Shown here: positions 11,703 to 15,040 of the stretch, one piece after another
How positions within the stretch are numbered: position 1 is the first letter of the stretch
How the letters are laid out: each line of letters begins with the position of its first letter
Origin: Zygophlyctis sp. KS116
Taxonomy: Eukaryota > Fungi > Chytridiomycota
Assembly: GCA_054661495.1 (NCBI GenBank)
Contig: BAAFSQ010000025.1
Coordinates: 1-32,000, forward strand
Length of the DNA stretch: 32,000 nt
Direction of reading: 5' to 3'
Translations under genes and position numbers: made by a program
The notes under the pieces: generated by a model
What the model was told of the DNA's origin: nothing
Database searches by the model: none
The model's input: the letters and a program-made list of their open reading frames with translations, nothing else

Positions 11703-11963
11703 AATTTTAAATGCAACTTTCATCTGTTCCACCCCCCAGTAACCACAGCCCAGTCTCTCTTTCTCTATGAGACTCCCATACAAAATAAATTCAACTTTAT
11801 GATTTGACTGTCGGCTCTTTATTTTACTATGAGATTGAAGCTTAGTTTGAATGAAAATGTGTAATCAACTAGACAGAATTCTGTCTGAGATTGTATGGTA
11901 GTGAGAATGTGGGTTGGCTGGTAGAGATGAATTTATAATACGGTACAATATCAAGACATTCTT

Positions 11964-14317
11964 TTATTGAAAATGATACACCTGATGATAAACGTTGATA
12001 AGGTTCCACAATCGCTGAACATCCAGGCAGGGAGTATCCGTGATTGGCGGAATATCGTTTAGACTTGGCCGGATGATGGACGGAATGGCATTAACATCAA
12101 ACATTCTTTCAAGGAGGTTATTCAAATCAGCAGTGGGCGTCTTGACAATTCCAGTCTTTTGGAACACACTGGTGGCTGACCCAGACTGAGTATACGTGAT
12201 TCTTGCTCCAAGGTTGAAGAATTGTAATGGCGGCAGCTGGTAAGACTCGAGGAGGCTGTTCACTCGCATTCTGTCACAACCTCCAATTTGACCAAATTCA
12301 ATGACATCTTTTCCTGAGTTCAAGTGCACCAATAAATCCATGGCTTCTCTTTCAGGCAAAACCCAGCCATTTCCAGGTAAAGAGCATTCAGGCCGCTTCC
12401 AAGACTCAACACCAAGACTTGATTTCCAGCGATAAATCTTCCATTTTACCCCGGAGACATTGAATTTCTGACCGTCAGCTTGCCAATAGCCATCATCTGA
12501 GAGTTCAAAAACAGCATCGGTATCAACTCGGAGCATTTCCGTCCAGTGATGGTCGATTGAACAAAACGAGATGATTTTCAAATCCCTTCCAGAACGAGAG
12601 TTTCCAGGAAATTTGATTTGAGGCCAAGGGGCTGTTCCACAAGCCGAATCAAGGACTGAGATGTGAGCAAGGGAGACAGGGGACAGAATCTGTTTGAGTG
12701 ACTTGAATTCTCCATCAAACGTAGACAATGAATCAACCCATTTGACAAACTGTCGTTTTTTAGCAAGGAGGAGAGCAGACCAAGATTCCGAGGGGAATTC
12801 AAATGCGGCTATTTCAACTGCTTGATTTTCCAGCCACTTTCGATTAGATATTCTCTTAGCTTCAGAGCCATTGCGTTTGGCATTTTTTTCCTTGACGTAT
12901 TCCTTGTGAGCGAGACAAAAGTGATACTGTCCGACGAGAATTAAATCATCAGTTTCTGGACAATAAAAGCATTTCAATCCATTTTTGGAAGCATCATCTC
13001 TCTAAAATTATTAGTAAAGTTCTAAACCCAATCCCCTCAGAATCCAATGCAGCACCAAAGGGTGGCGTGCAGTTGGAGACATTTTGGGGAGAATGATGGG
13101 TAACGTACCTGCTTGTTTTGACGATATACACTTGATGTCATTCGATGATTTTCAGCAGCAGTTGCATCTTCCATTTCTTTTGCTTCAGCCATAATCCTTG
13201 CATGTTCATCCATTTTCTAAAATTATTAGAAAAATTCTAAAAAGGAATCTCCCTCAGAATCCAATGCAGCACCAAAGGGTGGCTGACGCATTGGAAACAT
13301 CCTTGGGAGACATGAAGGGTGAAATTTACCTTTTCATTAAAGACTGAGTTGGTTTTTGCGTTGTTAGAAATCCCTTTGCTACATTGCGTGTAGACATGTA
13401 TCATTTCACCATCAAACTTGAGAAATTGGAAGCTGGATGCTGGGCAATGTGTCCGCTTCCCATGAGTTGTTCTTGAGCAGCTTGCACAGCGAAGCAGAAC
13501 CACATCTTCATGAATCACGGGTAGAACCATTTCTTTTTTGCGATTGAAGTAACCCACTTTAAATCTGGCTGAAACCAACGATTCATAGAGATTGCTAACC
13601 AAATCCCCTTTGAAAATTTCAACTAGTCTTGAACCCGAAGCAAATGATAGGAGATGTTTTCTTTGGGCGCGTTCTGTATCCTCAGATGAAAAAGACAAGT
13701 CATTAGACGAGAATGAGAGGTCAACACCAGAATCATCAACTATCGAAGGCATAAACACTTTGTTTTAATTTTGGAAAGAATAAATTACCTTCATCTTCAA
13801 CATTTGAATCGACCTCCATCCAATCAGCTGCCCACGTTGAATTCACATCTAATCGATTAGTATCAATAAAAAAATAAAAATCATCTTGTAGGACAGATTG
13901 TCCACAAACCATTTCCACTGGTCAGTAATAATCTCGCATCCATTTGCTAGGCCATTCCAGTATCAGTTCACTCTCACTTGCTCCACTATAATTGCTACTC
14001 CCTCAAGCTCGCCAGGGGCTTCCTCCAGAGAGGACTGGGTCTGCTATATATAGGAGATGATTGCAATCAAAGCTTCGTCACAAGGAGAGATAATCGAGGG
14101 ACTAGAGACACACCCAGCGGACAGTGTTCCGTAAAGAGTTTCCAAGGTAGCGGCCAACCACGTCTTGAGATGAGACGGGTGGCATACCATTTTGAGGGGA
14201 GAGCCAATCCATAAATTGTTCCAGTTCATTTTGATGGGTTTCCAAATCTTGAATACAAATATAATAGGCAAGGGAGATGTTGTCAGTATAGAAAGAAGCA
14301 GGTTCTGGTCGACTCAT
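11964..14317 (-). CDS. Orphan 587-aa protein: two Cys/His Zn-binding-like motifs plus a C-terminal DnaQ/DEDD 3'-5' exonuclease-like domain, 5 exons
   Basis: Exons 14317-14188, 13848-13789, 13757-13330, 13216-13109, 13001-11964 (1764 nt, no internal stop) joined by GT-AG introns of 339, 31, 113 and 107 nt. Motifs RCASC..HCPA and CFYC..FCLAH. ExoI-like ISVLDSACG, ExoII-like VIEFGQIGGCD, ExoIII-like TPCLDVQRLWNL. The domain call is by eye. Confidence 0.6.
13002..13108 (-). ncRNA. 107-nt intron containing a long RNA hairpin (copy A)
   Basis: GTACGT...CTAATAATTTTAG, phase 0. Nested pairings ACCCA/TGGGT, TCCCC/GGGGA, TCCAA/TTGGA, TGCA/TGCA, CACC/GGTG around a CTTT loop. Confidence 0.6.
13217..13329 (-). 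ncRNA. 113-nt intron containing a paralogous hairpin (copy B)
   Basis: GTAAAT...CTAATAATTTTAG, phase 0. Pairings TCTCCC/GGGAGA, TCCAATGC/GCATTGGA, CACC/GGTG. 33 nt identical to copy A (13251-13283 = 13034-13066). Confidence 0.6.
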
Positions 14318-14372
14318 TTTTTTTGTTTTTTAGGAAAGAAAAAGGAACGCCGCTCTTCCCTTTATTAAAAAA

Positions 14373-14906
14373 ATGTCTGGAGAAGAACAACTACCAAGAG
14401 TTGAAGAGGAAGAAAAACAAGGAGATTTCACTGGCAGAGTCTTTAATCACTGCACCTTTAATGCCTCTGTCACCTTTACTGGGAATGTCTTTGTAGATTC
14501 CTATGGCTACCGCAACATTGGAGATATTCTTCGCTTACAAGAACAAAGATTACATCAACTTCAACCGCAATCCACTGCAGCTTCTGGACCGTCCTCCTCT
14601 GCTCCAGCCACTGGTGCTCCCCCTGCTCCATCTCGTAGTGTCTCTGCACCTCTTTTTTCTGGACAACCATCTACCCCCTCTGTCTCGTCGCACCAGGTTC
14701 AAGAAATTGCTATACCAACTCCCCAAAAAACAATTGGAAAAGCACTGAAGCCAAAAAAGAGACAAGTTGTTGGGCTTAAAGAGATTACTCAGTCAAAGAG
14801 AAAGGGTGTTGAAGAAGCCGCGGGACCTTCCTCGGAAAAGTCACGCAGCACAAAAGCAAGAGTTGACTCGGATGAATATAAGCCTGGGGAGACTCAAATA
14901 CTCTGA
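14373..14906 (+). CDS. Orphan 177-aa intronless protein, S/P/A/Q-rich with basic NLS-like C-terminal half
   Basis: ATG in a strong aaaaaaATG context, 55 bp from the divergent gene's ATG; KPKKR and KRK clusters. Confidence 0.6.
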   Translation: MSGEEQLPRVEEEEKQGDFTGRVFNHCTFNASVTFTGNVFVDSYGYRNIGDILRLQEQRLHQLQPQSTAASGPSSSAPATGAPPAPSRSVSAPLFSGQPSTPSVSSHQVQEIAIPTPQKTIGKALKPKKRQVVGLKEITQSKRKGVEEAAGPSSEKSRSTKARVDSDEYKPGETQIL

Positions 14907-15040
14907 TTAACCATTTGTGGAAACTCAAGAAGGGTTCGGAATATATTTCTTTTATTTCTATAAATTCAATTGATTAAAACTCTTTGAGATGAGCATTTGA
15001 TTTGAAGCATCCAATTGAACAATTCCTTAGCCATGTTCTA

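Follow-up and report, generated by a model that had tools for sequence, protein, structure and literature searches.

The window analysed here is a stretch of 32,000 nucleotides (nt) from the chytrid fungus Zygophlyctis sp. KS116 (assembly GCA_054661495.1, contig BAAFSQ010000025.1, positions 1 to 32,000 of the forward strand). Two consecutive introns of a minus-strand gene in this window, referred to as intron A (13002-13108) and intron B (13217-13329), were shown to belong to a lineage-restricted and previously undescribed family of homologous structured spliceosomal introns, the core of which is frozen in sequence. Each member of the family combines a mini-intron frame (5' splice site plus branch point plus 3' splice site) with a hairpin module some 65-75 nt long. 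That module is frozen in sequence within the genome, changes between lineages and has repeatedly been doubled in tandem, in a setting where normal introns measure about 30 nt.

Introns A (107 nt, A-type) and B (113 nt, B-type) both run from GT to AG, lie in phase 0 and contain in-frame stop codons. Intron A precedes the exon beginning RDDASKNGLKCFYC, and the exon separating the twins (13109-13216, minus strand) consists of 36 codons (KMDEHAR...RQNKQ) whose frame is open into both adjacent exons. The branch-point motif CUAAU, which is kept in most copies of the family, was recognized in the sequence at 13010-13014 in intron A and at 13225-13229 in intron B, so that CTAAT sits 8 nt ahead of the AG in both. 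The other credible introns of the window, as collected in a crude scan, are 23-40 nt long, and the twins are three to four times the usual size. An internal conserved UUUAG was considered as an alternative 3' splice site and rejected, as it lies upstream of the branch point and its use shifts the frame into a stop.

An exact 33-mer occupies 13034-13066 in intron A and 13251-13283 in intron B (both minus strand) and gave 0 matches in 100 shuffles; it comprises an apical hairpin (CCACC/GGUG) and then a 3' strand down to CUGAGGG. Aligned over their whole length, the introns share 88% of columns (74% outside the core), whereas the exon ends flanking them do not resemble each other significantly at the nucleotide level (p = 0.07 to 0.99). 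An earlier note on this DNA, made from the letters alone, had described both the homology of the introns next to unrelated exons and the 33 identical nt, and both descriptions were confirmed. It had also named, as what would refute its reading, a recent neutral tandem duplication taking in exon sequence. This origin was checked and rejected, because the exon ends are not significantly similar and because the twins are not mutual closest relatives: outside the core, intron B is nearest to the downstream copy on contig C289 (0.80, versus 0.74 to intron A), and intron A is nearer to the copies on C869 and on the metagenome contig L022 (0.78) than to intron B (0.74). The order of A-like and B-like copies on C289 is the reverse of that in the window. 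An old segmental duplication spanning the intron is probably the simplest origin of the pair.

A search of the 12.7-Mb assembly by BLAST, by a 23-mer pattern allowing at most 3 mismatches and by a covariance model built from the copies gave a concordant set of 12 copies on nine contigs: the pair in the window, pairs on C289 and C780, single copies on C452, C572, C869, C65 and C34, and a degenerate copy on C584. All 12 lie in sense orientation within a GT..AG frame with homologous ends, and the repeat unit is the whole intron, including GT, CTAAT and AG. The copies measure 78-122 nt, compared with 23-40 nt for other introns. None of the 12 was intergenic, antisense or located in a recognisable unrelated gene. 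Instead, all of them occupy one relative position, just upstream of the Cys-knuckle exon of an orphan gene family that is multi-copy, fast-evolving and partly pseudogenised. A thirteenth, weak covariance-model match (C145) was discarded as coding sequence, and the sole match of a metagenome pattern scan, in a high-GC bacterial contig, was put down to chance.

The exon carrying the knuckle CFYC..HFC..H follows intron A, the C34 copy, the downstream copies on C289 and C780, and the copies on metagenome contigs L022, L024 and L036. Downstream of the C869 copy there is a different Cys-rich exon (..GMCPG..C..C) with a different C-terminal domain. Host genes of the CFYC type and of this CPG type were connected by hhalign at E = 0.007 but with a probability of 5%, and the N-terminal exons of the copies gave only marginal BLASTP scores against each other. 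Judged by these comparisons, the copies appear to reside in one orphan family or in a pair of distantly or marginally related families. Several hosts are broken: stop codons follow soon after the intron on C289 and C780, the AG of the upstream C780 copy is lost, C572 is truncated directly after the core, and C452 lacks a downstream exon. The degenerate C584 copy (L046, about 90-950) adjoins Ty3/gypsy-like aspartic protease and reverse transcriptase fragments. The C34 copy (L010:1681-1800) has no recognisable upstream exon; a divergent open reading frame (ORF) begins its start codon some 60-100 nt away, which places the copy in a promoter-proximal or 5'-untranslated position.

Conservation within the family is concentrated in the core, defined as the 30 alignment columns that span the apical hairpin and the 3' strand as far as CUGA. 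Among eight non-redundant genomic copies, only 2 of these 30 columns vary, compared with 57 of 79 elsewhere (Fisher p = 3.5e-10). Mean pairwise identity is 0.71 in the 5' splice-site flank and 0.57 between the branch point and the 3' splice site, both below that of the core, and these alignments support a constraint on the core that exceeds the constraint on the splice signals. The identical block has sharp edges that are the same in all copies. Its 23-mer is exact in 10 of the 12 genomic copies and CUGA is retained in 12 of 14 aligned copies. Within the genome, the 3' arm is no more invariant than the loop and the apical 5' arm, while identity is only 0.45-0.76 in those 5'-strand segments that pair with the invariant 3' strand. 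Since the 30-base core has stayed identical though the coding parts have diverged beyond recognition, some sequence-specific process must act on it. Introns that are more conserved than their flanking exons are rare, and in most known cases a functional RNA or a regulatory site lies within them.

Relatives of the introns were found in other lineages by way of the host proteins. The last exon of the window gene has five metagenomic homologues, and the C-terminal domain of the C869 type has 16 database homologues, one of which is annotated in Chytridiales sp. JEL 0842. Contigs of the homologues carry a long hairpin at the matching place, and these 'type II' introns (L049, L052, L053, L054 and L023) align with the family in the 5' flank, CACCC, UGCA-K-UUGG, UGAGG and the branch region. 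Exons of the CPG type are preceded by a homologous hairpin intron in C869, L049, L051-L054 and JEL 0842. Contig L051 has twin introns of its own (733-881 and 963-1106) that are separated by a 27-codon exon and identical in their last 38 nt; as in the window, these are not a recent neutral duplication, and an old segmental duplication is the simplest origin. The annotated intron of JEL 0842 (L048:2900-3231, 332 nt) is built from three repeats about 140 nt long, all carrying the same 26-29-nt hairpin block; each repeat might be an intron in its own right, with micro-exons in between. Tandem multiplication was seen in three lineages. Across lineages both arms of the hairpin change, and the block that is identical between twins in L051 and JEL 0842 covers other parts of the hairpin.

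Both introns were predicted by RNAfold to form a long stem, with minimum free energies of -30.1 kcal/mol for intron A (z = -2.8) and -31.8 kcal/mol for intron B (z = -3.6); across the family, z was -2.8, -3.6, -5.2, -6.9 and -4.2. The hairpin of intron A (13026-13101) comprises the outermost helix P0 (ACCCA/UGGGU) followed by P1, P2 and P3, and that of intron B (13247-13311) comprises P1 (UCUCCC/GGGAGA), P2 (UCCAAUGC/GCAUUGGA) and the apical P3. The outermost helix of intron A pairs intron nt 8-12 with 79-83, which leaves 7 + 24 = 31 nt outside. The same calculation gave predicted residues of 48 nt for intron B, 33 nt for C869, 35 nt for L024 and 23 nt for L022, with most copies between 23 and 54 nt.

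Several sequence changes preserve this pairing. The P1 helix reads UCCCC/GGGGA in intron A and CUCCC/GGGAG in intron B, P0 covaries between ACCCA/UGGGU in intron A and ACCAA/UUGGU in the metagenome copy L022, and P2 has changed on both strands across lineages (UCCAAUGC/GCAUUGGA here, ACCAAC/GUUGGU in L049 and UCCACCGC/GCGGUGGA in JEL 0842). Longer versions of the basal helices are present in C869, and a 12-nt insertion in L024 pairs with the pre-existing 3' flank, lengthening the stem. Across five type II sequences, the proposed fold pairs 84% of cells; with slid partners the share is 30-52%. The structural part of the earlier note, namely two long stems, a 5' arm that drifts yet keeps pairing, and about 31 nt left in intron A (a normal intron size here) once the hairpin is removed, therefore stands, and its suggestion that the hairpin loops out excess intron length agrees with the predicted residues of both twins.

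The distribution of intron types is at odds with that of the genes that carry them. Type I introns occur in both CFYC-type and CPG-type genes of this genome, and type II introns likewise occur in both (L023 has the C-terminal domain of the window gene, and L049, L053 and L054 have that of C869). Grouping by lineage and not by gene type indicates concerted evolution. At a finer scale, the loop of intron B has 3 T like that of its neighbour A, while other B-type copies have 4 T. It appears from these alignments that the copies either exchange sequence or track a lineage-specific partner, or both.

Intron B also carries a putative kink-turn (K-turn) signature of the box C/D type. Its 5' half (13298-13304, minus strand) consists of a 3-nt bulge AAG followed by GA, U and G, and includes the C-box-like AGGAUGU; the D-box-like CUGA (13254-13257; 13037-13040 in intron A) lies directly 5' of the basal stem. 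Together the two halves would form G.A, A.G, U.U and G-C beside a 6-bp stem. The signature was recognized in intron B, the downstream copies on C289 and C780 (C289dn and C780dn), C452, L049, L053, L054 and L023, and every type II copy has it in the form CC-AAU-GA ... GA-GG. CUGA and its stem are present in nearly all copies, while only intron B and the C289dn group contain the C-like box AGGAUGU/A, in place of which AAAAUGU stands in intron A. No Rfam family overlapped the element at E <= 10 in the window or at E <= 1 in five related loci, and a tRNA search gave nothing.

The last exon of the host gene (11964-13001, minus strand; 345 codons and a stop) encodes the Cys knuckle followed by an orphan C-terminal domain, and the exon upstream of intron B (13330-13758), delimited by its ORF and sequence, ends in ...NNAKTNSVFNEK (...NEK) and is itself preceded by a mini-intron of 31 nt (13759-13789). 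In all protein searches the exons were queried individually, and none matched in Pfam, the PDB or Atlas. AlphaFold (AF2) gave a predicted local distance difference test (pLDDT) score of 33 for the last exon and a second AlphaFold run gave 46; neither score was high enough to base a fold search on, and a DEDD exonuclease-like identity found no support. GC content is 0.40-0.44 in the host gene and in its divergent neighbour, a disordered basic ORF at 14373-14906, compared with 0.30-0.37 around them (section 12001-15000 of the window), and parts of this section are multi-copy in the source run. Immediately 3' of the stop codon lies an unstructured dispersed repeat of about 140 bp (11728-11871; z = -0.2), with at least 11 further copies at 83-96% identity on C869, itself a carrier of the intron element, and on at least nine other contigs. 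It may serve the gene family as a shared 3'-untranslated region or terminator; alternatively, it may be a mobile element of small size.

We tentatively favour, at somewhat less than an even chance, a role of the hairpin in the pre-mRNA, in which zipper stems correct the length of the intron and the core is a binding site for a factor that sets its removal. The basal helices would need only to pair, zipping the intron ends together, and a spliceosome adapted to introns of 25-40 nt would thereby see about 30-50 nt. The invariant apical hairpin and 3' strand would be the recognition site for a trans-acting factor that tunes excision, and in intron B and in the copies of the related lineages the K-turn at the stem junction would be part of that site. 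Candidate factors are a K-turn binder of the Snu13/15.5K type or the zinc-knuckle protein of the family itself, in which case the system would be autoregulatory; the suggestion of the earlier note that the introns are autoregulatory binding sites for the host protein is viable. This reading is preferred because of the placement of the family, the constraint on the core, the compensatory pairing, the stability of the fold, the residual length, the K-turn signature and the precedents described below.

A number of observations weigh against such a role. Among the assembled contigs of public runs aligned to the region, none contains a spliced joint at intron A or B. One lake metatranscriptome contig (run X23), the sole RNA contig touching the element, retains the core together with intronic flank, although it could derive from contaminating DNA. 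The host protein has no recognisable RNA-binding domain. Several copies lie in pseudogenes, and C65 and C34 have kept the core but lost the 5' arm, so the hairpin is not always needed. The K-turn signature is absent from intron A, L022, L024, C584, the upstream copies on C289 and C780 (C289up and C780up), C34 and C65. Formal covariation statistics are weak, and in the five type II sequences they did not rise above those of shuffles, given the small number and the relatedness of the sequences. The two strands fold to a similar degree, sense being only about 2 kcal/mol more stable than antisense on average; the fold alone therefore cannot tell RNA from DNA, and the structure could act as DNA. 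Finally, the introns cluster by lineage, as gene conversion would also give.

The last two points lead to the main rival, which we consider unlikely but the strongest competitor: a recombination or gene-conversion joint acting at the DNA level. Here, the intron would be the only nucleotide homology left between diversifying members, and ectopic exchange seeded in the palindromic core would keep the core identical inside one genome and shuffle N- and C-terminal modules, the RNA needing only to remain spliceable. Besides the sorting of both intron types by lineage and the equal folding of the two strands, this would account for the reversed A-like/B-like order on C289, the 3-T loop that intron B shares with its neighbour, the rearrangement breakpoints adjoining the core in C572, C65 and C34, and the 140-bp 3' repeat as a second non-coding block common to otherwise unalignable genes. 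Nevertheless, the identical block breaks off sharply at the same borders in all 12 copies, with no gradient of tract ends, and the 3-T/4-T length polymorphism persists within the block. A conversion tract of only 30 bp would, moreover, be unusually short. Across species, hairpin and position alike are conserved with compensatory changes, which indicates selection on structure.

A broader form of the splicing hypothesis, which we regard as doubtful, makes the core the operator of a chytrid-specific, family-wide splicing switch, in which one trans factor would read the hairpin of every member, twice in twin genes, and thereby govern the output of the entire gene family. Candidates for this factor are Snu13, in the case of the K-turn copies, the zinc-knuckle protein of the family or a small RNA from the hairpin.

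A small RNA is also the basis of a rival that we judge improbable, in which the intron is a precursor resembling a tailed mirtron or a hairpin siRNA, and Dicer releases a 3'-arm RNA of about 22 nt into Argonaute. At about 65-75 nt the hairpin has a suitable length, a U opens the 23-nt block that 10 of 12 copies carry without a mismatch, and genes for RNA interference (RNAi) are present, namely two Piwi-domain genes (C95:7358-8288 and C10:69581-70562) and two tandem RNase III genes (C585:417-1094 and C68:19490-20288). The earlier note had read an invariant 3' arm with a drifting 5' partner as the pattern of a microRNA precursor (pre-miRNA). Within the genome that description holds, but across lineages the arm is not conserved, the twin-identical blocks of L051 and JEL 0842 lying elsewhere in the hairpin, and a loop and apical 5' arm of equal invariance are untypical of pre-miRNAs. 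Wobble pairing explains the asymmetry between the arms: the 3' arm is 75% G+U, and such pairing alone makes it the more constrained one. The internal loops of the stem are large (intron A: 8 x 6 nt), and no trans site with up to 3 mismatches was found elsewhere in the assembly.

Still less probable is a stable, orphan box C/D-like intronic ribonucleoprotein (RNP) that would be excised from the lariat, be capped by its terminal stem and a Snu13-bound K-turn of the C/D type, and act in trans or on the host intron. Intron B and the C289dn group do have a terminal stem, an AGGAUGA/U box, CUGA and U.U at 3b:3n, type II introns have the corresponding K-turn motif, about 65 nt separate the stems, and there is a mammalian precedent (bioRxiv 10.64898/2026.08.03.742641). 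However, the C-like box is missing from the very copies listed above as lacking the K-turn signature, Rfam gave no match, the would-be guide differs between lineages, unlike a guide for a conserved rRNA target, and the two would-be guides pair with each other. The large-subunit (LSU) rRNA of the organism itself contains no complement of at least 10 nt placed next to CUGA, in a search that covered about 3.3 kb of its 3' part (contig C637), the small-subunit (SSU) rRNA, 5.8S rRNA and LSU 5' end being absent from the assembly. A methylation-guide small nucleolar RNA (snoRNA) was judged unlikely on these grounds: the C box is not conserved, the 3.3 kb of LSU rRNA searched contains no suitably placed complement, and the would-be guide varies between lineages and pairs with the 5' arm. 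The LSU rDNA in question, about 3.3 kb of the 3' part, is carried by contigs C637 and C954 (L032 and L030), and a universal SSU motif was not found in the assembly. A likeness between the reverse complement of the core and a conserved stretch near the LSU 3' end was attributed to chance, as the LSU on C637 and C954 differs and only 7 contiguous nt match.

Least probable of all is the introner reading, the other proposal of the earlier note. Here a mobile intron would copy itself to new sites, including the neighbouring one that made the twin. Although the homology unit is a whole intron with its splice signals, longer than regular introns and stably structured as in fungal introner-like elements (PMC3609843), and although the copies cluster by genome, multiply in tandem in three lineages and sit in gene types that are only marginally homologous, the pattern and covariance searches found only 12 copies, all before the Cys-knuckle exon, at a position conserved across species and never in a recognisable unrelated gene, intergenic DNA or antisense, inspection by eye revealed no target-site duplication beside the inverted-repeat arms, and differences of 20-50% outside the core mean that there was no recent burst. 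An introner in the usual sense is excluded by the number of copies and by where they sit.

The consequences differ with the explanation. Should the family-wide switch be real, it would be the first intronic autoregulator of the K-turn/hairpin type described outside yeast ribosomal protein genes and mammals, and an example of ligand-driven concerted evolution of an intron. As a splicing operator, the module would be a small, naturally occurring model in which to ask how spliceosomes used to mini-introns handle long ones, and how the members of a gene family can be co-regulated via a common intron. If the element is instead a recombination joint, non-coding 'hinges' would let effector-like families shuffle their modules.

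Among known systems, mirtrons share with these introns a hairpin in a short intron, one arm that is more conserved and the presence of RNAi genes; the introns described here differ in having tails on both sides, large internal loops, a conserved loop and no detectable targets. Fungal introner-like elements resemble the family in their whole-intron repeat unit, greater length than regular introns, stable predicted structure and degenerating copies, but number hundreds of copies in unrelated genes (PMC3609843), compared with 12 copies here, at one position that is shared with other species. The sister stwintrons of Hypoxylaceae (PMC8469720; PMC9024468) are likewise sequence-similar fungal introns with internal inverted symmetry. 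Nevertheless, no nested donor or acceptor for a two-step splice was found in the chytrid introns, and the internal UUUAG, upstream of the branch point, breaks the frame if used as a splice site.

In mammals, thousands of intronic K-turn and K-loop RNAs are reported to be bound by 15.5K, to have no rRNA targets and to repress excision of their host introns (bioRxiv 10.64898/2026.08.03.742641). Intron B and the type II introns have a putative K-turn signature with U.U at 3b:3n. The mammalian class has been described from mammals only and has a median length of 36 nt, whereas the chytrid hairpin measures 65-75 nt and half of the copies lack the motif. A parallel to the favoured reading is found in yeast, in introns with zipper stems and in autoregulatory intron structures (RPS17B, RPL7B, RPL22 and RPL30 type), and some conserved intronic structures there are bound by the product of their own gene and control splicing (bioRxiv 10.1101/2022.07.22.501175; PMC12311795; PMC4838235). 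By prediction, the outermost helix would do in the chytrid introns what a zipper stem does, leaving the short residues given above for introns A and B, C869, L024 and L022. Yeast zipper stems are poorly conserved in sequence (20-30%; bioRxiv 10.1101/2022.07.22.501175) and unique to each gene, whereas a 30-nt core is common to the copies of this family, which reside in genes other than those of ribosomal proteins and in a genome whose normal introns are only about 25-40 nt long.

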